A stretch of DNA of 64,000 bases from Macrostomum lignano (lineage: Eukaryota). The notes under the pieces are model-generated. The model saw only the letters and a program-made list of their open reading frames with translations, was not told the DNA's origin and did not search any database. The stretch covers positions 271,704 to 335,703 of the forward strand of contig NIVC01001206.1 in assembly GCA_002269645.1 (NCBI GenBank). Reading direction: 5' to 3'. Position 1 is the stretch's first letter, and the number at the start of each line of letters is the position of its first letter. Both the position numbers and the translations under genes were made by a program. Shown piece after piece: positions 13,181 to 64,000 of the stretch.

Positions 13181-18817
<5,637 letters not shown>

Positions 18818-31013: not shown

Positions 31014-32298
31014 TTGGGTGTTGCAAAAGTCTTTTCAGTAAATTAAAACCAACATGAAAAGTAGTATTCTTCAAATATTTAAGTATTTTGGCAGCTAAAA
31101 CTTTTTGCATGTGTTCATGACTTGCAATAGTTAATATTACTCAAAGTAGCTGCCTCCAGCTTCAATGGCTTTCTGAAGGTGTCCTTGGAAAGCTCTGCAA
31201 GAGTCATGGATGTAGGCTGGTAACATAGCATTCTACTCTTCTGTCACAACAGCCTTTAGCGACTCAATGTTGCTGTGGCAAACAGCATAGGCCTTGCCCT
31301 CAATGTGCACCTACAGACTATAGTCAAACAGCAACATCTGGCAATGATGGTGGCCAGTATGACTTTGGCCCAAAGTTCATGTTCTGCTCCAGCCACTCCT
31401 GTGCAACCCTTGATATGTGTGCAGGTGCTCCATCCTGTTGAAACACATAATTTCCATCAGGAAAGTTGGCATCAACCCACAGCTTGATTTTGCTAGCAAT
31501 AACATTTATGTACTCTGCTCCAGTCAGTTGGTATCCAACAGGAAACCACACCAATGGGCAGACACAGCCATTCGATGCAATAACACCATGCATCATCACA
31601 CTTAAGGGGTACTGATTGGTTGTTGAAATGAACCTAACTGACTCCAGAATGTCCTCCTCAAGCTTGATGAGTGTGTCATTGCAACAGTTTTGAGCAGGAT
31701 CCATGTTGAAGTTCTTCTTGTCACTGAAGATGATAATGCATCCAGTAGGGGCTGACTTCAAATCGTTCAGGAGTAGGCTTGCTCTTTCCAGATTGTTCTG
31801 CCATATCGTGTCACTTAGCAGAGGCCGCTCCTGCACTGTGAGGGACTTGCCACCAAGCTTTTCATGGTTCTTGAGATGGTCAACTTGTGGACATTGAATT
31901 CTTGTCCTTGGCTTGCCATTGAATGCTTTGGATTCTCAAGAATGGCATTGTGAAGCTCAGAATTGCTCATTGCCACTGGCCAGCCACTCTGGGGTTTGTC
32001 TTTTAAAGTGTTTTCAACTTCTTCATTGGCCATTTGCTTCTTGATGTTGTATACTGTTCTTTTAGTGCAGTTTATCATTGTAGCAACATCTTTAGGTTTA
32101 ATACCTGGGCATAGCAAGGTAGCAATCTGGTACCTTTTCATCTCCATCTTTAACAAAGTGGTCAGATTGATCTGAAATGCTAGCCAAAACCTTAGATTAT
32201 ATTGCTATATAGCTGGCTAAATGGGCTAGCTTGTAATGTGTATCTTTTTCTATTTATATGCATTTACAGATCACTAAAAAGACTTTTACAATACCCAG
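31014..32298 (-). mobile_element. Decayed Tc1/mariner DNA transposon (DDxD type, maT/DD37D-like), ~1.29 kb
   Basis: TIRs TTGGGTGTTGCAAAAGTCTTTTCAGT and ACTAAAAAGACTTTTACAATACCCAG, each flanked by TA. Frameshifted transposase: HTH (IATLL..GIKPKDVA..INCTKRTVYNI), IIFSDKKNF, VFQQDGAPAH, WPPSLPD, then DYSL..., ...AIEAGGSYFE*. Confidence 0.92.
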
Positions 32299-33876: not shown

Positions 33877-36228
33877 TCTCTACATATAAAAATCAAAACT
33901 CTGTCTGTATGTCTATGGACAATTTTGTTTGCTATGGACTCCCAAACCGCTCAACCAAATTACACCAAACTTTACACCCACCCTAAACTTACTACGGAGA
34001 ATGTCTTAGGCTACCTTAAAATTTCCTAAACTCAAGTCTTCTTACCTAAAAGTACAAAAAACTGCTCAAAATGTGCAATTTTTTCACTAAATCCTTTATA
34101 GCGCCACTCCAGTTTTACCAATCCTCTTCAAATTTGACATGAACAATCTTCAACTATCTTGACACAATTGTGTAAAATTTTGAGTCTTAAAGTTAATCCT
34201 GAACAGTGCTATGCACTTTTAAAGTTGGGCTGCTTTTTTCAGCGAGACAGCCACTCCAACCTCTGCTGCCTGCCTCTCTTTCATGATCTGGGCCCAGATG
34301 TGTAAAAGGGTTTCAAAATTGACTAACTTTCAGCTGCCATAAGTTTTTTCCACGTAAAGCAATTGACTTTAAACTTGACACAATTCTTAATTGACTTGTT
34401 CTCTGTCTAAATATAAAGTTTTAACTTTCTAACTCAATCAGAACAGAAACTGTAAGCACATGAAGTTTGTCTGCTTTTTCTGTTGTTTGTGCCACTCACT
34501 CACTCATTCCCCCAGAGCCAGATGAAGGATCAGGCAATAGGACTGAATGTACATAGCAAATGTACAGTGTTTTGGAATAACTTTTTTTATAGCCTTCTCG
34601 CACCCCGAGAGTGGAGAGGCTACGTTTAGTCATAACAGTTTAGTGAGAAATTCTAACCACTGCCTGCCCTCCCCTCTGTATTGGCAAACTCTGCAGCAAT
34701 TTAACAGTGGATGGCAATTGGCAAATCGAGGGAATCCATCAAAAAAAGCGAAAGCAAAAAGCAGTTTGTAAAAGCGAAAGATTTATGTAAAGGCGATGCG
34801 ATGCAATGCACAATGCAATACAACCCTACTAAATTAGGCACACTATGGAAATTTTAGGTTTCTTTTAAAGGTAGTGTATAAATTTTAAATGGCTTCCTAA
34901 GAAATGCATATTTCCTTGGTTGTTATTGTTAGACTGATGCAGACTGCAATGGAGCTGAAGATACACAGATTCCTTTCAGGGCTGCAAATTGGCAAGAAAG
35001 ATGACGTGATCAAAGCATGAGAACAACAATGAGAGTAGTACGTCCCACAAACTGGCTTTCGAAGCAGGGATTGGCAGACTTTTACTTCAAAAGCAGATAA
35101 AGAATTCAGCTTATGTGCAGGCCAGATGAGAGTGGAAGGAGAAGGAATAGACTATTAGAAGAGAGGAGAGGCAAGAGGGGGATTAGATAAAACATGGAAG
35201 ATAAGAGGAGAGACAAGTGGTGAGGAGAGAGCAGAAAAGAAGAGAGGAAGAAGCGAGAGGAGGGGAGAAAGGAGGGAGAGAAAAGGGTAAAGCTGAGAAG
35301 AGGGGAGAGATGAGACAGAGGATCGATGAGAGGAGAGTAGAGAAGAGTGAGAAGAGAGTAGAGATGAGAGACCAGAAAGAAGATGACAGAGGGTCAAGAG
35401 GAGAGGAGACATTAGAGAGGAGAGAGTAGAAAGGATAGAGAAGAGAGGAGATAAGGGGAGAGAGGAGTGAGAAGAGAAGAGATAGAGATAAGAGAGGGGT
35501 GTAAGAGGGAGAAAGGAGAGATGAGATTGCAGAGATGAGACAGATTAAAGGAGAGATGAGAGAGTAAAGATGAGAGATGAAAAGGTGAGAGGAGAGTACA
35601 GAGAGACGAGAGAAGATAATAGAGGAGAGAGAGTATAGAAGAGGGAAGAGAAAAGAAGAGAGGAGTAAGGAAAGAGAGGAGTCAGAAGAGGTGAAAGAGA
35701 AGAGTACAGAGGAGATAAGTGAGAGAACGTATAAGAGAGTAAAGATGACAGATGAGAGAGCAAAGATGAGGGTGAACAGACAAGAGATGGGAGAGTAGAG
35801 AGAACAGAGGAGAGATAAGAGAGATGAAAGAGAAGAGAGATAAGAGAAGATACAAGAGAAGAGAGGAGAGAAGAGAGAGGAGAGAGGAGAGACAAGGGAC
35901 GAGAGAGAAGAGAGGAAACACAAGAGACAATAGAAATTTTAAAGGATCTAAGGGACGTAAGGAAAGTCAGGGAGAGACCAGAGTTTGCCAATATATGTTT
36001 TAGAGTCAGACAGACATTGCCTGACATTCTTTGGAGTACCCCAGCCAACAATATCAATGTTTGCCTCAAACCCTAATTTTACACATTGTGCTTCATTTTG
36101 TCTACCTCTATCCTACAAACTATTAACAAGTTTTTGTTTGTTTATGGCCTTAGATTTCAGAATACATGCAAAAGTATTCCGGGGATTGGAATTCCCCAGG
36201 TTCAAAATCTGCGGGTTGCAACAGCTTG
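33877..36228 (+). mobile_element. Non-autonomous Helitron, copy 3 (more diverged)
   Basis: A|TCTCTACATATAAAAATC start; end GGGGATTGGAATTCCCC...GCGGGTTGCAACAGCTTG|T. Same internal blocks as copies 1 and 2. Confidence 0.87.
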
Positions 36229-38309: not shown

Positions 38310-39119
38310 TCATGGTTTTTGTCTGCCATGGTTTCCGATTGTTGAATGGCTGTCTCGGTTTGTAATACTTGTCGTCCGATGAGGATAATTAATTTGATAA
38401 TGTCCTTCTTGTCCGCAGTAGTAGCATCTGGCTTGTGCTTGTTCGTTTCTTCTTTTTTGTTCGGCGATAGCAGCTGTTTGATGTTGCATCAGCTTGTTTA
38501 ATTGCTGCGTCAACTTCTGCACGTCAGTGTTGCCTGTTGTCATTAATGGGGCACTGGCTTCCCCATTGCATTCCGCACCGCAGAAGTTCTTCGGTCTCGA
38601 TGTTTTCTCGCAAAAGTCTGTCCCGGAGTGACGGCTGTGCATTGTTTATTACATGCAGGATCAGATTTTGTTCACGATCCATCAATCGCTGTCGCTCTCT
38701 AGCTCATATATAGCGGCTAATTCTGCCGCACCCAAAGGTGGTTGGTCCGCAGCTGACAGTTGGCTGATGCAGTGCCTTAATTATCTGACAGACGTCGTCC
38801 ACACAAAGGTTAGAAAGGATTCCGTTGCTTGCATTCTTCTGTTGTGCAGCTTGTGCAGTAGCACCGATCTGTTTGTGCCACAACGGTTGAAGTGCTCGCG
38901 CAGTTGAATGATTAATGCCGAGTAATTTTGCTGTGTTGCCGCATCCAGTTTGCCGTAAATTTCTCGCGTAGTGCCTTGGAGGAGAGGTGGCAACAGTTGC
39001 GCCTTTTCTGGATTTTGTGGGTTGTATTCCCTACATACCAAGTCGAAATGATCCACGAAAGTGTTAAAATCTTTTTCCATAGAGAACGTGCCGACTTGGA
39101 TTGGATTGCGCCGCGCCAT
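38310..39119 (-). pseudogene. Degraded Ty3/Gypsy-like gag with CCHC zinc-knuckle remnant
   Basis: MARRNPIQVGTFSMEKDFNTFVDHFDLVC...KAQLLPPLLQGTTREIYGKLD...YSALIIQLREHF resembles a retrotransposon capsid N-terminus. Downstream frame has RCYYCGQEGHYQINYP (last Cys lost). Contains stops and frameshifts. Confidence 0.75.
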
Positions 39120-39833
39120 GTTAAGTTGTTGATGGGATAGAACGGTAGGTCTATTTGTACAGTCTGGGTCGATTTGTAACGGATCTTCCAGTGTGGTGTT
39201 TTTCTCGGAATAAACTTCGACTGTAATGGATTGTCTTGCGGTGTTTCTGACACGTCAATTTGTTACTTGCTGGTCCGAGCGAAGTTGTTCTTTATGTTAC
39301 CATTGGCTGACCGCAAACGCACTTTGTTTTATTCGCTTGCCGATTTTGCACTTACGAGTATGCGGCGTCCCGCAAAAGTGTATCTTCAAGTGGTGTCGAA
39401 GTGTAGAATTGTCTTCTTGTATTGCAAGTTCTTTTCTTTTTTGTGTTTTTGTTTGTTTTTTGTTTTCCTTTATTAATTAATTTCTGTTTGTTTTAATGCT
39501 TACCAATGAAGTTGTAATTGATTTTCGGTTTTGTTTTAGCTTGTTCCGACGAAAGTTTTAATTAATTTTCAGCTTGTTTTGAAATTACACTTGCTCGAGC
39601 TCGTTAAAACAAAATTAACACGCGTGCTCAAATTCTTTCACTCAAAATTGACAGGTTCTAAAGCCTGTACGCAAAAAATTACTCGAGTTTCACAGAGTAC
39701 GAAAATCGAAAAGTGTTAACTCTAACACGTGCGCACAAAATTAATGAAGACGCTCTCTCGTTACGTAACAATAGCTTGATCAGGGCTATTGCTCAAAAAG
39801 CTTGAGTAGTGCCGAGAGGGCGAGATCACCAAT

Positions 39834-43881: not shown

Positions 43882-44919
43882 GTAATAAGGCTTCTAAATT
43901 TTACTTTGATTTTGTATTAATTCCATACTCGCATCATCTGCGAAGTACTGGCGATTTTTTAATCCGGATTTTCTCCGGTTCTAGCCGCGTTCTTTTTCCC
44001 ACGATCGATGCCCCTCAGTCTCCTGCTCTTTCCTGTATATATGAACAGGAGACGAGAAACTGAGTACAGCGTACTGTACAGCACACTGTACACTCAGCTA
44101 ATGTGTGATTGCGACAGGAAGTACCGCTCTCGGTCGAGAATTTTCATCCTCTTGCCCCTTCCCTCTCTCTCTCTCTCTTCCCCCCAGTCCACCCCTAGGG
44201 CCTCCTGTATTCCCGATTCCCATCCCCTCGTCCTCTAACAGAGAATTATAAGACGCCGAACAGAGGCAGCCTTCCCCGACTTAACCAGCGACTCTCATAG
44301 AGATACCAAGTTTACTTATCCGCCAAGGAATAAGAATAACTCTGTCGTAAAATATATCTTTTTCGTTGAACGGTAAGTGGAAGAATAGAAATTAAATTAC
44401 ATTGTGTGCTTGAAATGAATATACGGTAGCTTTTACGTAGCTTTTACGGTAGCTTAGCTTCTTACATTTGTTATTAAAATGCACTCAGTATAGGAATGGA
44501 ATTATTAGTCCAAACTTACTATATTTCTTTGCCCAACGCAAAAAACACATTGAGTGAGCAAATGCTTACCAAATGTGGGCCGAAAGTGTAGGCAAAGGTC
44601 CTAGAAAGGGTTGTGCATTGGAAAGAATAACAGACACCTTCGCAAATTTAACAGCAGACATCTGATTCATCTACTTATACTAGAAATGTGAACATTTTAG
44701 TACTATAAAATCAGTTTGCGGATTTATTCAGTAAATTCTAGCCCGGTTAGTGAACTGACATTCAATCCGAGGTGTAATGAAATATTTTACCTGTCCCAAT
44801 CAAGTTTTAGTGATTTTAAGTGAAATGCGAATAATCAAATATTATTATCAAATAGGCAGGATGATTTTTATTACTTTCTTACCAAATTTTACCGACCCAA
44901 TCAAAGCCAGGAAGCCCAA

Positions 44920-47900
44920 ATGTCCGACGACGAGTCCCAGCAGATTGACCACTCCTTCCACTCGCTTCTGGAGTCTAGCAATGAGAAACGCATCTTCAAG
45001 CGCATCCTGGTGGCTAACCGGGGCGAAATTGCCATGCGCATCTACCGGGCCTGCAGCGAGTTGGGCATCCGGTCCATCGGTGTCTACAGCGAGGTGGACA
45101 CGATGCACATGCACCGCACCATGGCCGATGAGAGCTACCTGATTGGCAAGGGCTTGCCGCCTGTGCAAGCCTATCTAAACATACCGACTATAGTGCAGGT
45201 GGCCAAGGAGACTGGCGCGGACGCCGTGCACCCAGGCTACGGATTCCTGTCGGAGAGTGCGGAGTTTGCGCAAGCCTGCAACGACGCTGGAATAGTGTTC
45301 ATCGGGCCAAAGCCTGAGACTGTGGCTCTACTTGGAGACAAGGTTTGTGCGCTTTTTTGTTCGACTAACACTGGCTATTCCAAGTTAGTTTTTTATGAAA
45401 AGCATTAGGATTCGATCCGCCACTCTTCACTGAAAACTAACTCAGGTGAAAGCCCGTGCCGCTTCCGTCGCCGCCGGTGTCCCCGTGGTGCCCGGCTCGC
45501 CCGGGCCAATCCAAAGCGCTAAGGAGGTGACCGATTTCTGCGCCGAGCATGGCTTCCCGGTCATCCTTAAGGCGGCCTTCGGCGGTGGCGGCCGCGGCAT
45601 GCGAATTGTACGCCGCGCCGAGGATCTCGTTGAATCGTTCGAGCGGGCCACTTCTGAGGCGAAGGCGGCGTTCGGAAACGGGTCCATGTTTGTGGAGCGC
45701 TACGTGGAGAATGCAAGGCACATTGAGGTGAGCATATGCCATATTAGCTGTATGAAGTTTTATACTACAGACGGAGGGTTGATTGGCTCTCCTTCAACGC
45801 ATTATGAACTCTTTAGGGTTTAGCCGTTTTACTGACATGTGATTTGCTGGTTTGACAAGTGACATTCTAAATCTTCTCTACAGATACAAATCCTAGCTGA
45901 CAGCAAGGGAAACGTTGTTCACCTGCACGAGCGCGACTGTTCGGTTCAACGTCGCCACCAGAAGGTAGTGGAAATCGCCCCTGCTCCGTACTTGGACCCT
46001 GCGGTGGCAGCGGCCATTGCAGGCGACGCTGTGAAGCTCATGCGCCACGTAGGCTATCAGAATGCCGGCACTGTGGAGTTCCTCTATGAGCAGCACACTG
46101 GACAGCACTTCTTCATGGAGGTTAACCCGCGAATCCAGGTCGAGCACACTGTCACTGAGGAGGTCACTGGAGTCGATATTGTGCGCAAGCAGGTGAGATT
46201 AACACAGTCGCAGAGCATCTGAATTTAAACCTAAAGCTGATATATTACCATTTTCTTCTTGGTTCAGTTTCTTTCTGGTCGCTTGATAATATCTACACAT
46301 CGCGTTTGTTGTAATAAGCAGTCCAAACCGTGTCAGCTTACATTGGCAAGCCGATTCCCTCTAGCACTAACCATTGCTTTTTATTTCACTCCAACCCCCT
46401 GTCCTTTCTAGATCCGCATAGCCGAGGGCTACACGCTGGCTCAGCAGGACATCAGTCAGGAATCAGTCAAAGTCAACGGCTTCGCTATGCAGTGCCGCAT
46501 CACCACCGAGGATCCGCACCGGGGCTTCCAGCCTGACTCTGGCCGCCTGGAAGACTTCCGCCCCGGCCTGGGCATCGGCATCCGGCTGGACTCGGCCAGC
46601 GCCTACGCTGGCGCAATCATCTCGCCCTACTACGACAGCCTGCTCTGCAAGGTGATCGTCAAGGCAAGCAACTTCCACGACTGCGTGGTGAAAACGTACC
46701 GCTGCCTTGGAGAGTTTCGCATACGCGGCGTCAAGACCAACATACCGTTTTTGCGAAACCTGCTGAACTGCTCGGAGTTCCTTTCTGGCCCAGTCAGCAC
46801 CGGCTTTCTGGACCGCAATCCGCAGCTGGTAAAGCAGAAGACATCTAAAAACAAGGCCCAGCGCCTGCTGTTCTTTATTGGTGAGTGCGGGGAATTAATG
46901 AGTCATGTAGAATGTGTCTATAGGCAGTGGGTATCACCACATAAAACGTGCTACTACTAAATTTCATCCACAGCCGAGACGCTGGTGAATGGACCAACAA
47001 CTCCGATAAGTAACAAGGATATCCGCATTCCCGAAGTGAATCCACCGGTGCCGGATATTGACTATTGTAAGTAATGTATTTTTCTATTTCCTTTCTTCTG
47101 AATTCAAAATGCAAAGATACGACCCTAAATGTCGGGAAGCACAGGGGTGCAGTTTTGGTCACTTGTACTCATATTTTTGGCTTTTTGCCCTCTGCCAGAT
47201 AAAATTTTCAGTACTTAGTCGCCAGCTTAGTATGAGGATTTTAGTATATGGATTTATATACGTAAGTTGCTTTAATTGAACAGAATTTTGTGATATCCCG
47301 ATAAAAAAAGACTCGTATGTTTCCAACTACTTCAGCCTCCAGCTGCCCCCCCGGTTGGCGGCAGATTCTGCTTAAAGAGGGACCTGAGGCCTTTGCCAAG
47401 GCCATCCTGCGTCATCCGACTGTTCTCCTCACGGACACCACGATGCGCGACGCCCACCAGTCGCTACTGGCTACTCGAGTTCGAACTCACGACCTCATCA
47501 AGATTGCTCCCTTTGTAGCCAGACGCATGGAGAATCTACTTTCACTCGAGTGCTGGGGCGGCGCCACCTTTGATGTGGCCATGCGCTTTCTGCACGAGTG
47601 CCCGTGGGATCGACTTGAGGAGCTGCGGAAGAGGATCCCTAATATCCCGTTTCAGATGCTGCTACGCGGCGCGAACGCTGTTGGCTACACCAACTACCCG
47701 GACAACGTGGTGTACAAGTTCTGCGAGGAGGCTGTCAAGTCCGGCATGGACATATTTCGCGTTTTTGATTGTCTTAACTACATACCAAACATGGTTGTTG
47801 GTATGGACGCTGTGCGCAAAGCCGGCGGCGTGGTCGAAGCCGCGTTGTGCTACACGGGAGACGTCACCCGTTCGGAAAAGTACACCTTGCAGTACTATTT

Positions 47901-49266
47901 GGACACTGCGGAGCAGCTTGTGCGCGCCGGGACGCATATCTTAGCCATCAAAGACATGGCTGGCTTGCTGAAGCCCGATGGAGCGCGCCTGTTGGTGCGC
48001 GCTCTGAAGACAAAGTTCCCGGACTACCCGCTGCACGTGCACACACACGACACAGCTGGAGCCGGAGTGGCCACGCTACTCGCCTGTGCCGAAGCTGGCG
48101 CCGACATAATTGACGCCGCCGTCGACTCAATGAGCGGAATAACTTCGCAGCCGTCGATGGGTGCCCTGGTGGCCTGTCTGGGCGGCAACGGTGGGGGTCT
48201 CCGAATGCCGGACGTGACGCAGTACAGCTCCTACTGGGAGTTGACCCGACGTCTTTACGCCAACTTTGAGTGCACGAGCACTATGCGTAGCGGAAATGCT
48301 GACGTCTACGAGAACCAGATCCCGGGTGGACAGTATACCAACCTGCAGTTTCAGTCCATGAGCCTTGGACTCGCTGATCAGTTTGAACTGGTCAAGAAAA
48401 GATTTTCCGAGGCCAACCAACTGCTTGGTGACATTATCAAGGTGACTCCGAGCTCGAAGATTGTGGGAGACCTGGCCCAGTTTATGGTGCAGAACGGCCT
48501 GTCTTATAATGATGTTCTTGAGAGGGCTTCTGACCTCTCTTTTCCAACGTCTGTTATCGAGTTTTTTGACGGTCACGTCGGACAGCCGTACGGCGGCTTC
48601 CCTCCCAAGCTGGCGGCCGCTGTTCTTAAGGGTCGCCCGCCGACCTACACTGACCGACCGGGCGCCAAGATGCCACCATTCGACTTCGATGCGCTTCGTG
48701 AGCGTTTAAATGAGAAGTTCAGCGATCTTCACATCACGGAGAAGGATTTGATTAGCTCTGCACTGTATCCCCGCATGCACGAGCAGTTTATGATTAACCG
48801 TCGTCTATACGGTCCGGTATGGTTGCTAGATACGCGAGTGTTCTTCCAGGGCCCCAAGACGGCTGAGGAGCTGGAGATCCAGCTGCATCAAGGCAAGACG
48901 ATGTATGTCAAGCCACTGGCCGTGGCTGGCGTGGACAAGCGTGGCCAGCGAGAGTGCTTCTTCGAGGTCAACGGTCAGCAGCGGGTCGTTTACGTGACCG
49001 ACCGCGAGGCCTCTAAGGACATCATCATTCGCCCGAAGGCCGACCAGAACAACAAGGGCTCCGTCGGTTCGCCGATGCCTGGCGAGATTCTCGCTATCAA
49101 GGTTAAACAGGGCGACGCTGTTGAGAAAGGCCAGGCTCTGATAGTGGTGTCCGCTATGAAAATGGAGCTGGTCGTTTCGGCTCCTATAACCGGCAAAGTG
49201 AAATCTGTGTACGTGACGGTCAAGGACAAGGTGGAAGGCAACGACCTGGTGATGGACCTCGAGTGA
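44920..49266 (+). CDS. PC: Pyruvate carboxylase, 6 coding exons: 44920-45342, 45446-45727, 45884-46192, 46412-46880, 46974-47066, 47336-49266; ~1168 aa
   Basis: Biotin carboxylase motifs [60 protein letters not shown]. Carboxyltransferase motifs [38 protein letters not shown]. Biotinyl domain SAMKMEL. All GT-AG joins are in frame (phases 0,0,0,1,1). Confidence 0.97.
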
Positions 49267-50066: not shown

Positions 50067-53000
50067 TTGAGAATGACAGCCCGGTAACCTGCTTGTTTGA
50101 GAACGATGACCTGCTTGTTTGAGAACGATGACCTGCTTGTTTGAGAACGATGACCTGCTTGTTTGAGAACGATGACCTGCTTGTTTGAGAACGATGACCT
50201 GCTTGTTTGAGAACGATGACCTGCTTGTTTGAGAACGATGACCTGCTTGTTTGAGAACGATGACCTGCTTGTTTGAGAACGATGACCTGCTTGTTTGAGA
50301 ATGATGACCTGTTTGTTTGAGAATGATGACCCGCTTGTTTGAGAACGATGACCTGCTTGTTTGAGAATGATGACCTGTTTGTTTGAGAATGATGACCCGC
50401 TTGTTTGAGAACGATGACCTGCTTGTTTGAGAATGATGACCCGCTTGTTTGAGAACGATGACCTGCTTGTTTGAGAATGATGACCCGCTTGTTTGAGAAC
50501 GATGACCTGCTTGTTTGAGAATGATGACCTGTTTGTTTGAGAATGATGACCCGCTTGTTTGAGAACGATGACCTGCTTGTTTAAGAATGATGACCTGTTT
50601 GTTTGAGAATGGTGACCCGCTTGTTTGAGAACGATGACCTGCTTGTTTAAGAATGATGACCCGCTTGTTTAAGAACGATTACCTGCTTGTTAAGGAATGA
50701 TGACCCGCTTGCTTGAGAATGATGACCTGCTTCTTAAAGAATGATGACCCGCTTGTTTAAGAATGATGACCTGCTTGTTTGAGAACGATGGCCTGCTTGT
50801 TTGAGAACGATGACCTGCTTGTTTGAGAATGATGACCTGCTTGTTTGAGAACGATGACCCGCTTGTTTAAGAATGATGACCCGCTTGTTTGAGAACAATG
50901 ACCTGCTTGTTAAAGAATGATGACCCGCTTGTTTAAGAATGATGACCCGCTTGTTTAAGAACAATGACCTGCTTGTTAAAGAATGATGACCCGCTTGCTT
51001 GAGAATGATGACCTGCTTGTTAAAGAATGATGACCCGCTTGTTTAAGAATGATGACCCGCTTGTTTAAGAACGATGACCTGCTTGTTAAATAATGATGAC
51101 CCGCTTGTTTAAGAATGATGACCCGCTTGTTTAAGAATGATGACCCGCTTGTTTAAGAATGATGAACGCTTGTTTAAGAATGATGACGTGTTCGTTTGAG
51201 AATGATGACCCGCTTGTTTAGGAATGATGACCCGCTTGCTTGAGAATGATGACCCGCTTGTTTGAGAATGATGACCTGCTTGTTTGAGAATGATGACCCG
51301 CTTGTTTGAGAACGATGACCTGCTTGTTAAAGAATGATGACCCGCTTGCTTGAGAATGATGACCTGCTTCTTAAAGAATGATGACCCGCTTGTTTAAGAA
51401 TGATGACCCGCTTGCTTGAGAATGATGGCCTGCTTGTTTGAGAATGATGACCCGCTTGTTTAAGAATGATGACCCGCTTGCTTGAGAATGATGACCTGCT
51501 TGTTAAAGAATGATGACCCGCTTGTTTAAGAATGATGACCCGCTTGTTTAAGAACGATGACCTGCTTGTTAAAGAATGATGACCCGCTTGTTTAAGAATG
51601 ATGACCCGCTTGTTTAAAAATGATGACCCGCTTGTTTGAGAATGATGACCTGCTTGTTTGAGAATGATGACCCGCTTGTTTAAGAATGATGGCCTGCTTG
51701 TTTGAGAATGATGGCCTGCTTGCTTGAGAATGATGACCTGCTTGTTTGAGAATGATGACCTGCTTCTTAAAGAATGATGACCCGCTTGTTTGAGAATGAT
51801 GACCCGCTTGTTTGAGAATGATGGCCTGCTTGTTTGAGAATGATGGCCTGCTTGTTTGAGAATGATGACCTGCTTTTTGAGAATGATGACCTGCTTGTTT
51901 GAGAATGATGACCTGCTTGTTTGAGAATGATGACCTGCTTGTTAAAGAATGATGACCCGCTTGTTTGAGAATGATGACCTGCTGCTTGTTTGAGAATGAT
52001 GACCCGCTTGTTTGAGAATGATGACCCGCTTGTTTGAGAACGATGACCTGCTTGTTTGAGAATGATGACCTGCTTGTTAAAGAATGATGACCCGCTTGTT
52101 TGAGAATGATGACCCGCTTGTTTGAGAACGATGACCTGCTTGTTTAAGAATGATGACCCGCTTGTTTAAGAACGATGACCTGCTTGTTAAAGAATGATGA
52201 CCCGCTTGCTTGAGAATGATGACCTGCTTCTTAAAGAATGATGACCCGCTTGTTTAAGAACGATGGCCTGCTTGTTTGAGAACGATGGCCTGCTTGTTTG
52301 AGAACGATGACCTGCTTGTTTGAGAACGATGACCTGCTTGTTTGAGAATGATGACCTGCTTGTTTGAGAATGATGACCTGCTTGTTTGAGAACGATGACC
52401 CGCTTGTTTAAGAATGATGACCCGCTTGTTTGAGAACAATGACCTGCTTGTTAAAGAATGATGACCCGCTTGCTTGAGAATGATGACCTGCTTGTTAAAG
52501 AATGATGACCCGCTTGTTTAAGAATGATGACCCGCTTGTTTAAGAACGATGACCTGCTTGTTAAATAAAGATGACCCGCTTGTTTAAGAATGATGACCCG
52601 CTTGTTTAAGAATGATGACCCGCTTGTTTAAGAATGATGACCGCTTGTTTAAGAATGATGACCCGCTTGTTTAAGAATGATGACGTGTTCGTTTGAGAAT
52701 GATGACCCGCTTGTTTAAGAATGATGACCCGCTTGCTTGAGAATGATGACCCGCTTGTTTGAGAATGATTACCTGCTTGTTTGAGAACGATGACCTGCTT
52801 GTTAAAGAATGATGACCCGCTTGCTTGAGAATGATGACCTGCTTCTTAAAGAATGATGACCCGCTTGTTTGAGAATGATGACCCGCTTGTTTAAGAATGA
52901 TGGCCTGCTTGTTTGAGAATGATGGCCTGCTTGCTTGAGAATGATGACCTGCTTGTTTGAGAATGATGACCTGCTTCTTAAAGAATGATGACCCGCTTGT

Positions 53001-56000
53001 TTGAGAATGATGACCCGCTTGTTTGAGAATGATGGCCTGCTTGTTTGAGAATGATGGCCTGCTTGTTTGAGAATGATGACCTGCTTTTTTGAGAATGATG
53101 ACCCGCTTGTTTAAGAATGATGGCCTGCTTGTTTGAGAATGATGACCTGCTTGTTTGAGAATGATGACCTGCTTGTTTGAGAATGATGACCTGCTTGTTT
53201 GAGAATGATGACCTGCTTGTTTGAGAATGATGACCCGCTTGTTTGAGAATGATGACCCGCTTGTTTAAGAACGATGACCTGCTTGTTAAAGAATGATGAC
53301 CCGCTTGTTTAAGAATGATGACCCGCTTGTTTAAGAATGATGACCCGCTTGTTTAAGAATGATGACCCGCTTGTTTAAGAATGATGACCTGCTTGTTTAA
53401 GAATGATGACGTGTTCGTTTGAGAATGATGACCTGCTTGTTTAAGAATGATGGCCTGCTTGTTTGAGAATGATGACCTGCTTGTTTGAGAATGATGACCC
53501 GCTTGTTTAAGAATGATGACCTGCTTGTTTGAGAATGATGACCCGCTTGTTTAAGAATGATGACCCGCTTGTTTGAGAATGATGACCTGCTGCTTGTTTG
53601 AGAATGATGACCTGCTTGTTTGAGAATGATGACCCGCTTGTTTAAGAATGATGGCCTGCTTGTTTGAGAATGATGACCTGCTTGTTTGAGAATGATGACC
53701 CGCTTGTTTGAGAATGATGACCTGCTTGTTTGAGAATGATGACCCGCTTGTTTAAGAATGATGGCCTGCTTGTTTGAGAATGATGACCTGCTTGTTTGAG
53801 AATGATGACCCGCTTGTTTAAGAATGATGACCTGCTTGTTTGAGAATGATGACCTGCTGCTTGTTTGAGAATGATGACCTGCTTGTTAAAGAATGATGAC
53901 CCGCTTGTTTGAGAATGATGACCCGCTTGTTTGAGAACGATGACCTGCTTGTTTGAGAATGATGACCTGCTTGTTTAAGAACGATGACCCGCTTGTTTGA
54001 GAATGATGACCCGCTTGTTTAAGAATGATGACCTGCTTGTTTGAGAATGATGACCTGCTGCTTGTTTGAGAATGATGACCTGCTTGTTAAAGAATGATGA
54101 CCCGCTTGTTTGAGAATGATGACCCGCTTGTTTGAGAACGATGACCTGCTTGTTTGAGAATGATGACCTGCTTGTTAAAGAATGATGACCCGCTTGCTTG
54201 AGAATGATGACCTGCTTCTTAAAGAATGATGACCCGCTTGTTTAAGAACGATGGCCTGCTTCTTTGAGAACGATGGCCTGCTTGTTTGAGAATGATGACC
54301 TGCTTGTTTGAGAACGATGACCTGCTTGTTTGAGAATGATGACCTGCTTGTTTGAGAATGATGACCTGCTTGTTTGAGAACGATGACCCGCTTGTTTAAG
54401 AATGATGACCCGCTTGTTTGAGAACAATGACCTGCTTGTTAAAGAATGATGACCCGCTTGCTTGAGAATGATGACCTGCTTGTTAAAGAATGATGACCCG
54501 CTTGTTTAAGAATGATGACCCGCTTGTTTAAGAACGATGACCTGCTTGTTAAATGATGACCCGCTTGTTTAAGAATGATGACCCGCTTGTTTAAGAATGA
54601 TGACCCGCTTGTTTAAGAATGATGCCCGCTTGTTTAAGAATGATGACCGCTTGTTTAAGAATGATGACGTGTTGTTTGAGAATGATGACCCGCTTGTTTA
54701 AGAATGATGACCCGCTTGCTTGAGAATGATGACCGCTTGTTTGAGAATGATGACCTGCTTGTTTGAGAACGATGACCTGCTTGTTAAAGAATGATGACCC
54801 GCTTGCTTGAGAATGATGACCTGCTTCTTAAAGAATGATGACCCGCTTGTTTGAGAATGATGACCCGCTTGTTTAAGAATGATGCCTGCTTGTTTGAGAA
54901 TGATGCCTGCTTGCTTGAGAATGATGACCTGCTTGTTTGAGAATGATGACCTGCTTTTAAAGAATGATGACCCGCTTGTTTGAGAATGATGACCCGCTTG
55001 TTTGAGAATGATGCCTGCTTGTTTGAGAATGATGCCTGCTTGTTTGAGAATGATGACCTGCTTTTTGAGAATGATGACCCGCTTGTTTAAGAATGATGGC
55101 CTGCTTGTTTGAGAATGATGACCTGCTTGTTTGAGAATGATGACCTGCTTGTTTGAGAATGATGACCTGCTTGTTTGAGAATGATGACCTGCTGCTTGTT
55201 TGAGAATGATGGCCTGCTTGTTTAAGAATGATGGCCTGCTTGTTTGAGAATGATGACCTGCTTGTTTAAGAATGATGGCCTGCTTGTTTGAGAATGATGA
55301 CCCGCTGCTTGTTTGAGAATGATGACCTGCTTGTTTGAGAATGATGACCTGCTTGTTTGAGAATGATGACCTGCTTGTTTGAGAATGATGACCCTGCTTG
55401 TTTGAGAATGATGACCTGCTTGTTTGAGAATGATGACCTGCTTGTTTGAGAATGATGACCCGCTTGTTTAAGAACGATGACCTGCTTGTTAAAGAATGAT
55501 GACCCGCTTGTTTAAGAATGATGACCCGCTTGCTTGAGAATGATGGCCTGCTTGTTTGAGAATGATGACCTGCTTGTTTGAGAATGATGACCTGCTTGTT
55601 TGAGAATGATGACCCGCTTGTTTGAGAATGATGACCCGCTTGTTTGAGAAAATGATGACCTGCTTGTTAAAGAATGATGACCCGCTTGTTGAGAATGATG
55701 ACCTGCTTGTTAAAGAATGATGACCCGCTTGTTTAAGAATGATGACCCGCTTGTTTAAGAACGATGACCTGCTTGTTAAATGATGACCCGCTTGTTTAAG
55801 AATGATGACCCGCTTGTTTAAGAATGATGACCCGCTTGTTTAAGAATGATGACCCGCTTGTTTAAGAATGATGACCCGCTTGTTTAAGAATGATGACCCG
55901 CTTGTTTGAGAATGATGACCCGCTTGTTTAAGAATGATGACCCGCTTGTTTGAGAATGATGACCGCTTGTTTGAGAATGATGACCTGCTTGTTTGAGAAT

Positions 56001-59000
56001 GATGACCTGCTTGTTTGAGAATGATGACCTGCTTGTTGAGAATGATGACCTGCTTTTAAGAATGATGACCCGCTTGTTTGAGAATGATGACCCGCTTGTT
56101 TGAGAATGATGACCTGCTTGTTTGAGAATGATGGCCTGCTTGTTTGAGAATGATGACCTGCTTGTTTGAGAATGATGACCTGCTTGTTTGAGAATGATGA
56201 CCTGCTTGTTTGAGAATGATGACCCGCTTGTTTGAGAATGATGACCTGCTTGTTTGAGAATGATGCCTGCTTGTTTGAGAATGATGCCTGCTTGTTTGAG
56301 AATGATGACCTGCTTGTTTGAGAATGATGACCTGCTTGTTTGAGAATGATGACCTGCTTGTTTGAGAATGATGACCTGCTTGTTTGAGAATGATGACCTG
56401 CTTGTTTGAGAATGATGACCTGCTTGTTTGAGAATGATGACCTGCTTGTTTGAGAATGATGACCTGCTTGTTTAGAATGATGACCTGCTTGTTTGAGAAT
56501 GATGACCTGCTTGTTTGAGAATGATGACCTGCTTGTTTGAGAATGATGACCTGCTTGTTTGAGAATGATGACCTGCTTGTTTGAGAATGATGACCTGCTT
56601 GTTTGAGAATGATGCCTGCTTGTTTGAGAATGATGACCTGCTTGTTTGAGAATGATGACCTGCTTGTTTGAGAATGATGACCTGCTTGTTTGAGAATGAT
56701 GACCTGCTTGTTTGAGAATGATGACCTGCTTGTTTGAGAATGATGACCTGCTTGTTTGAGAATGATGACCTGCTTGTTTGAGAATGATGACCTGCTTGTT
56801 TGAGAATGATGACCTGCTTGTTTGAGAATGATGACCTGCTTGTTTGAGAATGATGACCCGCTTGTTTAAGAACGATGACCTGCTTGTTAAAGAATGATGA
56901 CCCGCTTGTTTAAGAATGATGACCCGCTTGCTTGAGAATGATGGCCTGCTTGTTTGAGAATGATGACCTGCTTGTTTGAGAATGATGACCTGCTTGTTTG
57001 AGAATGATGACCCGCTTGTTTGAGAATGATGACCCGCTTGTTTGAGAACAATGACCTGCTTGTTAAAGAATGATGACCCGCTTGCTTGAGAATGATGACC
57101 TGCTTGTTAAAGAATGATGACCCGCTTGTTTAAGAATGATGACCCGCTTGTTTAAGAACGATGACCTGCTTGTTAAATGATGACCGCTTGTTTAAGAATG
57201 ATGACCCGCTTGTTTAAGAATGATGACCCGCTTGTTTAAGAATGATGCCCGCTTGTTTAAGAATGATGACCGCTTGTTTAAGAATGATGACGCTGTTGTT
57301 TGAGAATGATGACCGCTTGTTTAAGAATGATGACCCGCTTGTTGAGAATGATGACCGCTTGTTTGAGAATGATGACCTGCTTGTTTGAGAATGATGACCT
57401 GCTTGTTAAGAATGATGACCCGCTTGTTTGAGAATGATGACCTGCTTCTTAAAGAATGATGACCCGCTTGTTTGAGAATGATGACCCGCTTGTTTAAGAA
57501 TGATGGCCTGCTTGTTTGAGAATGATGGCCTGCTTGTTGAGAATGATGACCTGCTTGTTTGAGAATGATGACCTGCTTTTAAGAATGATGACCGCTTGTT
57601 TGAGAATGATGACCCGCTTGTTTGAGAATGATGCCTGCTTGTTTGAGAATGATGGCCTGCTTGTTTGAGAATGATGACCTGCTTTTTGAGAATGATGACC
57701 GCTTGTTTAAGAATGATGGCCTGCTTGTTTGAGAATGATGACCTGCTTGTTTGAGAATGATGACCTGCTTGTTTGAGAATGATGACCTGCTTGTTTGAGA
57801 ATGATGACCTGCTTGTTTGAGAATGATGCCTGCTTGTTTAAGAATGATGCCTGCTTGTTTGAGAATGATGACCTGCTTGTTTAAGAATGATGCCTGCTTG
57901 TTTGAGAATGATGACCTGCTTGTTTGAGAATGATGACCTGCTTGTTTGAGAATGATGACCTGCTTGTTTGAGAATGATGACCTGCTTGTTTGAGAATGAT
58001 GACCGCTGCTTGTTTGAGAATGATGACCTGCTTGTTTGAGAATGATGACCTGCTTGTTTGAGAATGATGACCTGCTTGTTTGAGAATGATGACCTGCTGC
58101 TTGTTTAAGAATGATGGCCTGCTTGTTTGAGAATGATGACCCGCTTGTTTAAGAATGATGACCGCTTGTTTAAGAATGATGACCTGCTTGTTAAGAATGA
58201 TGACCGCTTGTTTAAGAATGATGACCCGCTTGTTGAGAATGATGCCTGCTTGTTGAGAATGATGACCTGCTTGTTTGAGAATGATGACCTGCTTGTTTGA
58301 GAATGATGACCCGCTTGTTTGAGAATGATGACCTGCTTGTTAAAGAATGATGACCGCTTGTTTGAGAATGATGACTGCTTGTTAAAGAATGATGACCCGC
58401 TTGTTTGAGAATGATGACCTGCTTGTTAAAGAATGATGACCCGCTTGTTTGAGAATGATGACCTGCTTGTTAAAGAATGATGACCCGCTTGTTTAAGAAT
58501 GATGACCCGCTTGTTTAAGAACGATGACCTGCTTGTTTGAGAATGATGACCCGCTTGTTTGAGAATGATGACCTGCTTGTTTGAGAATGATGACCTGCTG
58601 CTTGTTTGAGAATGATGACTGTTGTTTGAGAATGATGACCTGCTTGTTTAAGAATGATGACCCGCTTGCTTGAGAATGATGACCTGCTTGTTTGAGAATG
58701 ATGGCCTGCTTGTTTGAGAATGATGACCTGCTTGTTTGAGAATAATGGCCTGCTTGCTTGAGAATGATGACCTGCTTGTTTGAGAATGATGACCCGCTTG
58801 TTTGAGAATGATGACCCGCTTGTTTAAGAATGATGGCCTGCTTGTTTGAGAATGATGACCTGCTTGTTTGAGAATGATGACCCGCTTGTTTAAGAATGAT
58901 GGCCTGCTTGTTTGAGAATGATGACCTGCTTGTTTAAGAATGATGGCCTGCTTGTTTGAGAATGATGACCTGCTTGTTTGAGAATGATGACCTGCTGCTT

Positions 59001-59956
59001 GTTTGAGAATGATGACCTGCTTGTTTGAGAATGATGGCCTGCTTGTTTGAGAATGATGACCTGCTTGTTTGAGAATGATGACCTGCTTGTTTGAGAATGG
59101 TGACCTGCTTGTTTGAGAATGATGACCTGCTTGTTTGAGAATGATGACCTGCTTGTTTGAGAATGATGACCTGCTTGTTTGAGAATGTGACCTGCTTGTT
59201 TGAGAATGATGACCTGCTTGTTTGAGAATGATGACCTGCTTGTTTGAGAATGATGCCTGCTTGTTTGAGAATGATGACCGCTTGTTTAAGAATGATGACC
59301 CGCTTGTTTGAGAATGATGACCTGCTTGTTTGAGAATGATGACCCGCTTGTTTGAGAATGATGACCTGCTTGTTAAAGAATGATGACCCGCTTGTTTAAG
59401 AATGATGACCCGCTTGTTTAGAATGATGACCCGCTTGTTTAAGAATGATGACCTGCTTGTTAAAGAATGATGACCGCTTGTTTGAGAATGATGACCCGCT
59501 TGTTTGAGAATGATGCCTGCTTGTTTGAGAATGATGACCTGCTTGTTTGAGAATGATGACCTGCTTGTTTAAGAATGATGACCTGCTTGTTTGAGAATGA
59601 TGACCTGCTTGTTTGAGAATGATGACCTGCTTGTTTGAGAATGGTGACCTGCTTGTTTGAGAATTATGACCTGCTTGTTTGAGAATGATGACCTGCTGCT
59701 TGTTTGAGAATGATGACCCGCTTGTTTAAGAATGATGACCTGCTTGTTTGAGAATGATGACCTGCTTGTTTGAGAATGATGACCTGCTTGTTTGAGAATG
59801 ATGACCTGCTTGTTTGAGAATGATGACCTGCTTGTTTGAAAATGATGACCCGCTTGTTTGAGAATGATGACCTGCTTGTTTGAGAATGATGACCTGCTTG
59901 TTTGAGAATGATGACCTGCTTGTTTGAGAATGATGACCTGCTTGTTTGAGAATGAT
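50067..59956. repeat. 22-bp satellite array, ~9.9 kb (~450 units)
   Basis: GAGAATGATGACCTGCTTGTTT with variants (AAC/AAT, CCC/CCT, TTAAG/TTGAG, GGCC). Confidence 0.98.
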
Positions 59957-60215
59957 CTGCTCGGCATCAGCCAACATGCAGGCAGTCGACGGTAGGGTGT
60001 CTGCAGCGTGAGCGGCAGCACTTGCGCCGGCTGCGGACAGTAGGATTCGACTGCCTGCTCGATGAGGATGATGTTACCTGCCAGCTGGAGTCGCCGACGG
60101 CGCAACAGTTCACTGGGACGGGACAGGCCGGTGCGGCGATAGAGGGCCGCGTTGGTGACTCACTCGTAGCCGATCTTGAAGGCGGCGCGCAGCAGGGCCA
60201 GCGTGGCCCCCATGG
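59957..60215 (-). mobile_element. RTE-clade non-LTR retrotransposon fragment (C-terminal part of RT ORF), decayed
   Basis: Minus frame ALLRAAFKIGYE*VTNAALYRRTGLSRPSELLRRRRLQLAGNII...ESYCPQP.QVL.LTLQTPYRR matches the RTE post-RT pattern (xVTNxxLYRRxGL...LLRxRRLxxAGH). Contains an internal stop and abuts the satellite. Confidence 0.72.
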
Positions 60216-61534
60216 CACTTTGGGCAGGTCCTATTCTCGTACATGTAAAGAGATCTTTGGTCTTGCAGTCCTCACTGTTTCGGAGTTTATGGTTTGCTAA
60301 TCTAAACTGTGACAGCGTGAACTTTAATTCTAGAGTTTGAAGCTGTAGTAAAATTGACTTCTTCTTTAGTAGTCGTCGTCTTGCTTAAGATCCTCTTCAT
60401 CATCCTTGCTCATGCAGAGCTTGAGGGGCTGAAGAACTGAGTAGTCAGAGTGCATAATCATCGAATTATTGTAGACCTTTTCCTCTTCTTGGTTCTGTAC
60501 CAACGAGGTTCGATTTCTAGATGCAACTACGCAAGTACTTGTCTTGTTAGGGGAAACACCAAAGTAGCAATACAATTAATGCAGAAATATTAGTTGAAGA
60601 TTTTTTAAGTCTCTTCTTTTCTAATCTAGGATTGTAAGATGGAACCTTGTGATGGTAATCAATTTTTAGGGACAAGTTTTGACTGTACGAGTATTGGATG
60701 GACTTTTTCTTATTAGCTGGTATGGATATGGAGTAGACAGACAGAACGAGCTCACATGCTGCAGGGTTATCTTCCTTAAAAGTACATTGACCAATTTTTA
60801 TGCTTTATGTGTCAGACTGAAGATAATTTTTCAACGAAAAAACTTGTTATTTGAATTTCCTTTCTATCTGGCTTCGGTCAAGATTTACACCAGGAAATGT
60901 GAAGGAAGGTCAGTACTAGTGTTACTCAACCTCGAATGTCTGTGGTGTCACATTTCCAATGCACCTCGGTACTTTGAAATTGGTCAAGGTACGTGTCAAA
61001 CTCTCTCTGCTTGATAGACTTTCATTGGTCACTTGCAACCATTGCCTCCCAAGCGCACTGGCACTACACTCTTACAACATGCTAAAGTTTCCACCATGAA
61101 ACCAGTGGTCAACTTTTCTCAGATTTCGGTCCCAAGTGACGCAATTCACATCCCGTCCGCGGATCGACTTTGGGTGATGCAACTTGCGTTACAAGCTTAG
61201 GCTGGTGAGGAGAGAGTGGAGAGTTATATGGCTAGGTTTAGATTAAAGCTGCCACTCTCTTACTTTAACAGGAACTTTAACATGCTGATGAGTGTGTTAT
61301 ATACACCAAGGTCCTACTATGGCTGCCACCTTTCTTTAAAAGTATCTTCTACGAGCGTAAGGTAGAGCCCTGTGGTGGAGGGTTACCTTAGGTAACCAAG
61401 CAAGTCACAAGGAGTCACTGATTAGTTTATTCGCGGGTTAAGGTCTATCAGTAAGCACACTTTCCGGGACTAAAGATTCCATGAGGAATGTGGACCCGCA
61501 GCCAGCAAGGAAGCAAGCAGTCATGCTCATTGCG

Positions 61535-62444: not shown

Positions 62445-62945
62445 CACTGCGGAGATATGAGCCCTATCTCTGTGCATTGGGGACGGCTAAGCACTGCAGA
62501 GATATGAGCTCTATCTCTGTGCATTGGGGACGGCTAAGCACTGCAGAGATATGAGCTCTATCTCTGTGCATTGGGGACGGCTAAGCACTGCAGAGATATG
62601 AGCTCTATCTCTGTGCATTGGGGACGGCTAAGCACTGCAGAGATATGAGCTCTATCTCTGTGCATTGGGGACGGCTAAGCACTGCAGAGATATGAGCTCT
62701 ATCTCTGCTTAACACAGGAGTGATAGGAGAAGAGGCGGCCTATTTCTTTACACTGGAGATGGTTAACACTGCAGAGATAGGAGGAGAGGCGGCCTATCTT
62801 CTTTGCATTGGGGTGGTTAACACTGCAGAGATAGGAGGAGAGGCGGCCTATCTCTTTGCATTGGGGTGGTTAACACTGCAGAGATAGGAGGAGAGGCGGC
62901 CTATCTCTTTGCATTGGGGTGGTTAACACTGCAGAGATAAGATGT
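62445..62945. repeat. Two adjacent hairpin-forming tandem repeats (47-bp x ~5, then ~53-bp x ~4)
   Basis: CTGCAGAGATATGAGCTCTATCTCTGTGCATTGGGGACGGCTAAGCA, then CTGCAGAGATAGGAGGAGAGGCGGCCTATCTCTTTGCATTGGGGTGGTTAACA. Confidence 0.92.
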
Positions 62946-62977
62946 TAATCTATGTAATTGGGAGTGGATTTGCGAAA

Positions 62978-63040
62978 GAGCCAATCACAGAGCCCGGAGT
63001 GGGATGGGTGGTTTGGGGTGGTTCGGTCGAGGGTATATAA
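62978..63040 (+). promoter_or_regulatory. CCAAT box, G-rich boxes and TATA box upstream of the PC4-like ORF
   Basis: GAGCCAATCACA 62978-62989, GGGATGGGTGG/GGGGTGG, TATATAA 63034-63040, ATG at 63145. Confidence 0.6.
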
Positions 63041-63144: not shown

Positions 63145-63697
63145 ATGGACATCTGTGAAGGCTATAAGGCACAAGTCCAGGAGTTTGAAGGACAAAAATT
63201 TATCGCTATTCGCAAATTTTACCGACACGGCAGCACGGCAAGTCTGAAGCCAGGCGTCCCAGGATTCAACCTGAATGTTCACCAATGGAAGAAATTGAAG
63301 GAGGTGAAACGCTCACTTGTGATTTCTGCACGCAACAACGAGCCCAAGGTCGTGAAACTCGCTTCGATAAGTTTGTGGAAGTCAAAGGCGGCATCATTTG
63401 CTCAAACGGCTGCCGGAAGATTGCTGCGAGGAGTTTTTGAGACGAAACGCCGTACCACTGACTCCGCCGCTGTGGCAGAAGCTCTGGAAAATCGCCTCCT
63501 GGATCGACGGTCAGCTGGTGGCTCCCTTGAGGAACACAATGCAGTACGAGCTGGAGTCTGATGAGGAAGAGGAGGAAGAGGACAAGAAGCTCAAGTTGGA
63601 GGCTGACCAGGACACGAAGCCCATAATGGAGACTGATGAGGGCGGAGATCATGCTGATGAGAGGACGTTAGCTCGCCCACAAGGCCGCGCATTGTGA
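63145..63697 (+). pseudogene. Tandem PC4/Sub1-like ssDNA-binding domain protein with acidic C-tail; two apparent frameshifts (decay or assembly error)
   Basis: Domain 1 KAQVQEFEGQKFIAIRKFY...LKPGVPGFNLNVHQWKKLKE matches the PC4 pattern (V.V.xF.G...I.IRxxY...KPG..Gi.L...QW..LK). After frame switches near 63360 and 63400: FDKFVEVKGGII / LKRLPED...NAVPLTPPLWQKLWKIASWIDGQL, then ESDEEEEEEDKKLKLEADQD. Confidence 0.65.
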
Positions 63698-64000
63698 CTG
63701 AGCCAATCACATCCACACCGATACTTCGGTTGATTCTGATGCTGGACTGCTTCCGCAGCGGACACCAACCTTGAGGAAGATCCGGTGTGGTATCATTCAG
63801 GGCGCATGCGCGGCTTCGACGGTGAGCAGCAGCAGCAGGAAGCGAAAGCTGCATTTCAACTTCGTCGGCAGGACGCGATGAGGCTGCAGCCCAATGTTCG
63901 CTTTGATACTGAACAGCTAGAATGCTTTGAATGCATTGGACTAACTAAATTACTTTTAGCTTGCACATGATTATCAGCCTGACGGCAACTATGCTGTTTT

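Follow-up and report, generated by a model that had tools for sequence, protein, structure and literature searches.

Background

The closest described relatives of the gene reported here are PC4/SUB1 (PF02229; 1pcf, 2c62, 4usg) and MoSub1 (4agh/4bhm). PC4 itself has one repeat, forms a homodimer, and carries an N-terminal regulatory region that is Ser/acidic and Lys-rich. A different arrangement is found in the single-chain ("type I") PC4-like domains defined by Janowski and Niessing in 2020 (PMC7549692), such as repeats I-II of Pur-alpha, in which two strand-strand-strand-strand-helix repeats are joined by a short linker within one polypeptide and are expected to swap helices, forming one nucleic-acid-binding domain. 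No sequence similarity to PF02229 can be detected in these type I proteins, and the literature treats the homodimeric and the single-chain PC4-like forms as unrelated in sequence. Several repeats per chain also occur in the multi-PC4 proteins of Chloropicon, Trebouxia and Amoebophrya (two to four tandem PF02229 domains), whose repeats are all of the canonical kind that Pfam recognises, and some of which have an N-terminal segment resembling DEK-C by eye. Finally, there are the OB-fold SSBs of bacteria and phages, which carry an acidic C-terminal tip.

Here we examine a gene at the end of a 64-kb stretch of Macrostomum lignano DNA ("the window" denotes this whole stretch), which the original prediction had read as a tandem-PC4 protein with an acidic tail and as a candidate virus-type ssDNA-binding protein. 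The explanation that we consider probable is another one, namely that this is a chromosomal, intronless, Pol II-type animal gene belonging to a small, sparsely sampled and flatworm-like double-PC4 family, and that the window copy is a recently inactivated pseudogene.

Among the systems above the family is nearest to PC4/SUB1: its first repeat (module 1) is a member by sequence, scoring above the gathering score, the size and the four-strands-plus-helix layout are alike, and PC4 and MoSub1 are the best structural matches of the model of an intact relative (P0001). Unlike PC4, however, the family proteins start at the domain and then add a diverged PC4-like repeat (module 2), a variable Ser/acidic linker and a basic C-terminal motif. 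With the type I domains (PMC7549692) the family would share, judging from its sequence, two strand-strand-strand-strand-helix repeats with a short linker in one polypeptide, but in this family repeat 1 is a true PF02229 domain and repeat 2 can still be detected as a diverged copy of it, which gives the arrangement the appearance of a "type II" repeat that was recently fused or duplicated. The algal and protist multi-PC4 proteins are the best-scoring matches outside the family, yet they have neither the diverged second module nor the C-terminal motif of the family, and their identity to module 1 is only 30-40%. Its only resemblance to the OB-fold SSBs lies in a presumed role in ssDNA binding and in having an acidic stretch, which intact members place inside the chain, their ends being basic; no Pfam OB-fold family was found, and no OB-fold SSB was among the top PDB and Foldseek matches, which were PC4 and MoSub1.

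Results

Intact relatives of the window gene

An exhaustive search of 1.8 billion representative proteins, with a 127-nt splice model of the window gene as the query (see below), gave 66 matches, seven of them at E<=1e-10 and the best, P0001, at E 5e-34. The intact relatives obtained in this way were P0001 (251 aa), P0002 (247 aa) and P0003 (142 aa), to which a follow-up word-based search added P0067 (246 aa) and P0068 (272 aa), while two distant members of the same layout, P0061 (181 aa) and P0052 (238 aa), came from metagenome assemblies. The intact ORFs of the family are uninterrupted on their own contigs and encode proteins of ~180-270 aa. In P0001, P0002, P0067 and P0068 (246-272 aa) a single frame encodes what the window splits over three, and the joining of three frames in the original prediction is therefore correct as a description of homology. 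Among the intact relatives dN/dS is 0.09-0.30 over both modules, with dS saturated, and these values indicate purifying selection on a family that appears functional and old enough to span well-separated species.

Each protein is represented by a cluster of one to three sequences on one or two contigs, and each contig occurs in a single sequencing run; clusters as tiny as these indicate a low copy number. The relatives all lie on contigs of 0.9-1.5 kb, and no relative with genomic context was found in IMG/VR or in the JGI metagenome contigs. The nearest proteins outside the family are cellular multi-PC4 and single-PC4 proteins of green algae, Amoebophrya, a choanoflagellate, a fungus and amphioxus.

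Two observations on these outgroups may be added. In green algae and marine protists, canonical PC4 domains occur two to four in tandem in unnamed proteins (P0004, P0006-P0010), and the P0054 cluster contains several paralogous "uncharacterized" proteins of Branchiostoma floridae (244-341 aa), which have a C-terminal PC4 domain and are encoded at different chromosomal loci. Multi-PC4 architectures are thus widespread but unstudied.

Module 1 is a PC4 domain

The reading frame opens with the ATG at 63145, and a PC4 domain (PF02229, E 2.6e-8) makes up its first 53 residues, with a Pfam score of 33.7 bits against a gathering score of 25 for the stretch 63166-63303. In the PDB this module matched human PC4 (4usg, E 3.9e-5) and MoSub1 as well, and by tblastn it is 76% identical to residues 1-72 of P0001, P0067 and P0068. 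Among the relatives, PF02229 scored 28.4 bits in P0002 and slightly under the cut-off of 25 in P0001 and P0003. A word-based homology search with the first-frame ORF gave no match, and the ORFs of the second and third frames, taken alone, had no match in Pfam or the PDB.

The AlphaFold model of P0001 predicts for module 1 four strands and a helix (E2-4, E7-14, E17-26, E35-43 and H45-63; local pLDDT 50-83), and the top 12 Foldseek matches of this model were all PC4 or MoSub1, with probabilities of 0.99-1.0 and TM scores of 0.56-0.71 (normalised to the target). In the window copy and all relatives the PC4 domain begins at residue 8, and none of them has a Ser/acidic and Lys-rich regulatory region ahead of it. 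The protein starts directly at the domain, in agreement with the original prediction on this point.

Module 2 resembles PC4 at the profile level

Module 2 (residues ~66-125) is highly conserved across the family alignment, but Pfam did not recognise it, either in the window or in the relatives. We compared it by hhalign with a profile of 146 PC4 domains taken from matches outside the family. A five-member module-2 profile matched with a probability of 74% and a score of 25.3, over the last strand and helix only, and none of 200 column shuffles did as well (10.2 +/- 2.0, maximum 16.2). When the distant members P0061 and P0052 were added to the profile, their own PC4 domains being removed from the target, the resulting seven-member profile matched with a probability of 93% (E 3.2e-7, score 34.6) over 59 collinear columns, i.e. 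the whole module, and none of 150 column shuffles reached the observed 34.6 (9.5 +/- 2.3, maximum 17.8). Moreover, the weak matches of the module-2 HMM in unrelated proteins lie within the PC4 domains of those proteins, in the same register. At the level of profiles, module 2 is accordingly to be described as PC4-like.

Structure prediction was less informative. For module 2 AlphaFold predicted three strands and then two helices, the first short and the second long, with low confidence and from five sequences only (pLDDT 49 and pTM 0.27 for full-length P0001; pLDDT 61 for a model of module 2 only), and Foldseek with the module-2-only model found no PC4 match. This miss says little, because a single PC4-like repeat is unlikely to fold alone (PMC7549692). 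Of the two PC4-like modules that had been proposed, the first is thus confirmed by Pfam and the PDB, and the second is supported by profile comparison but not recognised by Pfam or Foldseek. Given the Pfam miss and the weak models, the case for a pseudo-dimer fold consists of profile similarity and predicted secondary structure. In the profile alignment, moreover, the aromatic residues on the DNA-binding face of PC4 and module 1 have no counterpart in module 2, which shows gaps or non-aromatic residues there.

The acidic stretch is an internal linker

In the intact relatives the Ser/acidic stretch is internal (alignment columns ~160-200) and is followed by about 100 more residues, which end in a conserved basic motif (EDPxWY ... 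basic cluster ... RRQ[DE]AM). The window retains this C-terminal motif (Table 1), beyond 63697, where the gene had been thought to end. The acidic stretch seems terminal in the window copy because the reading frame is broken, and by comparison with the family it corresponds to the internal linker and not to a C-terminal tail. Both the Glu/Asp-rich tail of the original prediction and its likeness to the tails of SSBs were hence products of the broken frame.

Table 1. Features of the window, with the double-PC4 gene first
Feature	Position	Strand	Basis or remark
Broken double-PC4 gene, whole	63145..63970	+	start codon to first stop of the frame bearing the last conserved motif
Module 1, canonical PC4 repeat (four strands and a helix)	63145..63336	+	PF02229, PDB, tblastn
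Module 2, diverged PC4-like repeat, split here by frame changes	63349..63529	+	family alignment, hhalign
Glu/Asp-rich stretch, corresponding to the variable Ser/acidic linker of intact relatives	63545..63661	+	translation and family alignment
Remnant of the conserved C-terminal motif	63773..63907	+	translation against family alignment; third tblastn piece
Putative Pol II core promoter	62981..63040	+	read directly; compared with L005
Two abutting tandem arrays just upstream of the promoter	62445..62939	.	Tandem Repeats Finder and repeat search
1-Cys peroxiredoxin gene (AhpC-TSA and 1-cysPrx_C)	1484-3656	-	
Ankyrin-repeat ORF, 1808 aa, intronless, uninterrupted	7047-12473	+	Pfam Ank_2, E 2.8e-200
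PIAS-type SUMO ligase gene (PINIT and zf-MIZ)	25305-26805	-	
HTH_23 transposase-like fragment	31327-32204	-	
CCHC zinc-knuckle gag-like fragment	38313-39254	-	
Pyruvate carboxylase gene, at least five GT-AG introns (~55-280 nt), one 649-aa exon	44900-49266	+	
Satellite array, 22-bp unit, ~450 copies	50087-59956		91% matches
GC-rich stretch beside the satellite	~59960-60230	-	by eye only, LINE reverse transcriptase-like (C-terminal tail)

The frame changes of the window copy

A tblastn search with P0001, P0067, P0068 and P0002 recovered three collinear pieces of the window, each in a different frame, at 76%, 75-92% and ~40% identity. Read in this way the gene contains two frame changes and three in-frame stops; a frameshift-aware protein-to-DNA alignment gave four frame changes at the strictest penalty and 4-8 otherwise, with no stop crossed. 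The extent of the whole gene in Table 1 is based on these tblastn searches, a DNA alignment and the frameshift-aware alignment, the last being used for the counts only. Family homology stops at 63907, so that 93 bases of the window lie after the homology and 30 after the gene. With at least four frame changes between conserved pieces, the window copy as assembled is therefore unable to make the family protein.

One may consider the frame changes to be only apparent, if the middle of a spliced single-PC4 gene were removed as a 175-nt (or 127-nt) GT-AG intron. We enumerated every GT-AG intron that leaves a single frame open between the ATG and the stop at 63697. A good donor (GAG/GTGAAA) and acceptor (CAG/) are indeed present, the 175-nt model lengthens the alignment with PC4 in the PDB by 4 residues and 2.4 bits, and the neighbouring pyruvate carboxylase gene has introns of 55-270 nt. 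Nevertheless, many GT-AG combinations yield open frames by chance, and the supposed intron is conserved protein in one continuous frame of the intact relatives, to which the window sequence within it is 75-92% identical at the protein level. Splicing is thus extremely unlikely, and both the 175-nt and the 127-nt models were rejected since the intact relatives, which are intronless, encode the "intron" as conserved coding sequence. Programmed frameshifting was also set aside, as the frame changes are too many and the relatives need none.

A recent pseudogene is the most likely state of the window copy, judging from the lesions, and its main rival is a local assembly error. The gene could be intact in the organism if the frame changes were consensus errors, e.g. 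unpolished long-read indels in a repeat-flanked region, and several observations are in keeping with this. Each window piece, compared with the relatives in its own frame, is strongly constrained (pN 0.12-0.18, pS 0.83-0.84), the promoter is conserved (see below), the inferred frame changes are mostly of one kind, and reads are difficult to map for polishing at a locus set between a 10-kb satellite and tandem arrays. On the other hand, at least four frame breaks in ~0.76 kb here compare with none in some 8.8 kb of coding sequence elsewhere in the window: the pyruvate carboxylase exons shift frame only across intron-sized gaps and the 1808-aa ankyrin ORF is unbroken, and the breaks are therefore specific to the double-PC4 locus. 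In addition, a family copy from an independent data set (L004, JGI 3300040779, gene at 223-651) has an in-frame stop in module 2, after which family-like sequence continues in the same frame. This is a second decayed or truncated copy, which argues that decay occurs in the family. We regard an assembly error as rather unlikely.

For the pseudogene reading, the window copy has disabling lesions relative to intact relatives, and such lesions are absent from the neighbouring genes. The low pN as against the high pS of its pieces implies that constraint lasted until recently, and its protein divergence is not above that between intact relatives. This normal divergence and the intact-looking promoter fit a very recent decay, and would fit a sequencing or assembly error as well.

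Promoter and upstream repeats

Upstream of the gene there are a CCAAT box (62981), a G-rich block and a TATATAA element (63034), the last ~105 nt ahead of the ATG at 63145. The upstream sequence of a relative (L005) keeps the same order as the window, namely CCAAT, a GGAGTGGGGTGGGT-like block, GGTCGAGG and TATATAA. A second contig with the same gene (L006) starts ~27 nt past that TATA box, which suggests that a transcript begins at about that distance after it.

The two tandem arrays that lie just upstream consist of a 47-bp unit repeated 5.6 times and a 53-bp unit repeated 4.3 times; the two units are related and each has a palindromic core of ~20 nt. Short palindromic repeats of the CTAAGC type are also found upstream in another relative (L001).

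A 20-nt motif around the CCAAT box occurs twice, at 62970-62989 and at 63692-63711, with 17 of the 20 bases identical, and its second copy sits just past the first stop of the third frame. A tandem gene unit delimited by this repeat was considered and rejected, as the flanks do not align, and the motif was treated as a shared promoter-type motif.

The surrounding window

The 64-kb window is ordinary animal nuclear DNA, with genes, satellites and transposon fragments (Table 1). The closest named match of the pyruvate carboxylase exon is from Macrostomum lignano, at 70% identity, with other animals at ~62% or less. An Rfam scan of the window gave no match, and neither did exact look-ups of the ankyrin ORF and of a 138-aa ORF. 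A literature search for PC4 in Macrostomum, or for PC4 domains in transposons, found nothing relevant.

Some features of the surroundings were noted in passing. The ankyrin ORF consists almost wholly of ankyrin repeats and is intronless, in contrast to the neighbouring pyruvate carboxylase gene. Flanking the ligase gene are 18-bp and 42-bp tandem arrays (23609-24664 and 26850-28668), which create long spurious ORFs. The 10-kb satellite with its 22-bp unit has strong GC and AT skew and lies ~3 kb upstream of the double-PC4 gene, and Tandem Repeats Finder reported many minisatellites across the window. GA-rich low-complexity arrays recur at 14688-15895, 17495-18470 and 35333-35916, with similar ORF fragments at their flanks; those at 13830-14084 and 16908-17291 (both on the minus strand) have peptide strings in common (13.8/16.9 kb), as do fragments at 18.5/36.0 kb. 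The recurrence of arrays together with flanking ORF fragments suggests local segmental duplication.

Host gene or viral gene

The original prediction took the gene for a virus-type SSB and not a host PC4, suited to strand-displacement replication of a linear DNA element. In its full form this reading supposes an ssDNA-binding protein of a virus or mobile element, an acidic-tailed pseudo-dimer that served such replication and was later endogenised. Some properties of the gene are compatible with it: it has no introns, is lineage-restricted, evolves fast except in the two modules and tends to decay, viruses do have PC4-like proteins (weak matches in BFVD and PHROG), and the downstream neighbourhood is unseen, as the window ends just past the gene.

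Other observations speak against it. The 63 kb upstream hold only the peroxiredoxin, the ankyrin gene, the PIAS-type ligase, pyruvate carboxylase, satellites and small transposon fragments, without a capsid, polymerase, integrase or packaging ATPase gene or terminal repeats, and no gene that is a hallmark of replication was found there. The family has no relative in IMG/VR, its PHROG matches are at E>=0.018, and BFVD gave none at E<=0.001, while the nearest outgroups are the cellular PC4 proteins listed above. A low-copy host gene would be expected to give such tiny clusters on single-run contigs, the protein has its acidic stretch inside and a basic end, and the CCAAT/TATA promoter is conserved. 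A viral or mobile-element origin of this kind is accordingly very improbable, and nothing ties the window gene to a virus or a linear DNA element.

A variant of this idea makes the family as a whole not an old host gene but a domesticated one, acquired from a parasite of flatworm-like animals, either a large DNA virus or a Maverick-type element; the fused PC4 pseudo-dimer would have been the ssDNA-binding protein of that element, and the window copy would be a decaying endogenous remnant. Although the contigs of the relatives are under 1.5 kb and the window ends just past the gene, we hold such a capture to be highly unlikely. What stands of the fused pseudo-dimeric SSB is therefore the fusion of two repeats, and a pseudo-dimer that is plausible from the profile match, but not the virus-type SSB role.

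Discussion

If the gene is, as we think probable, a host gene of the double-PC4 family, its protein may work as follows. The two repeats would pack together within one chain, giving an intramolecular "type I" PC4-like domain in place of the homodimer of PC4. Module 2 would probably be mainly a structural partner, because the aromatic positions of the PC4 DNA-binding face are missing from it in the profile alignment, leaving one functional ssDNA-binding half-site. The basic C-terminal end resembles a nuclear-targeting signal and might act as one, and the Ser/acidic linker may have the regulatory role that belongs to the N-terminal region in PC4.

The window copy itself is probably dead, and it offers no evidence for a new virus, mobile element or replication mechanism. 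What the locus does document is an unnamed animal family of narrow distribution that joins a genuine PC4 repeat to a degenerate copy of itself. Such a double-PC4 family would link the homodimeric to the single-chain PC4-like forms, as an intermediate that can be traced in sequence. Its significance is modest, but it may be of interest for the study of PC4/SUB1, of Pur-alpha-type domains and of gene innovation in flatworms.
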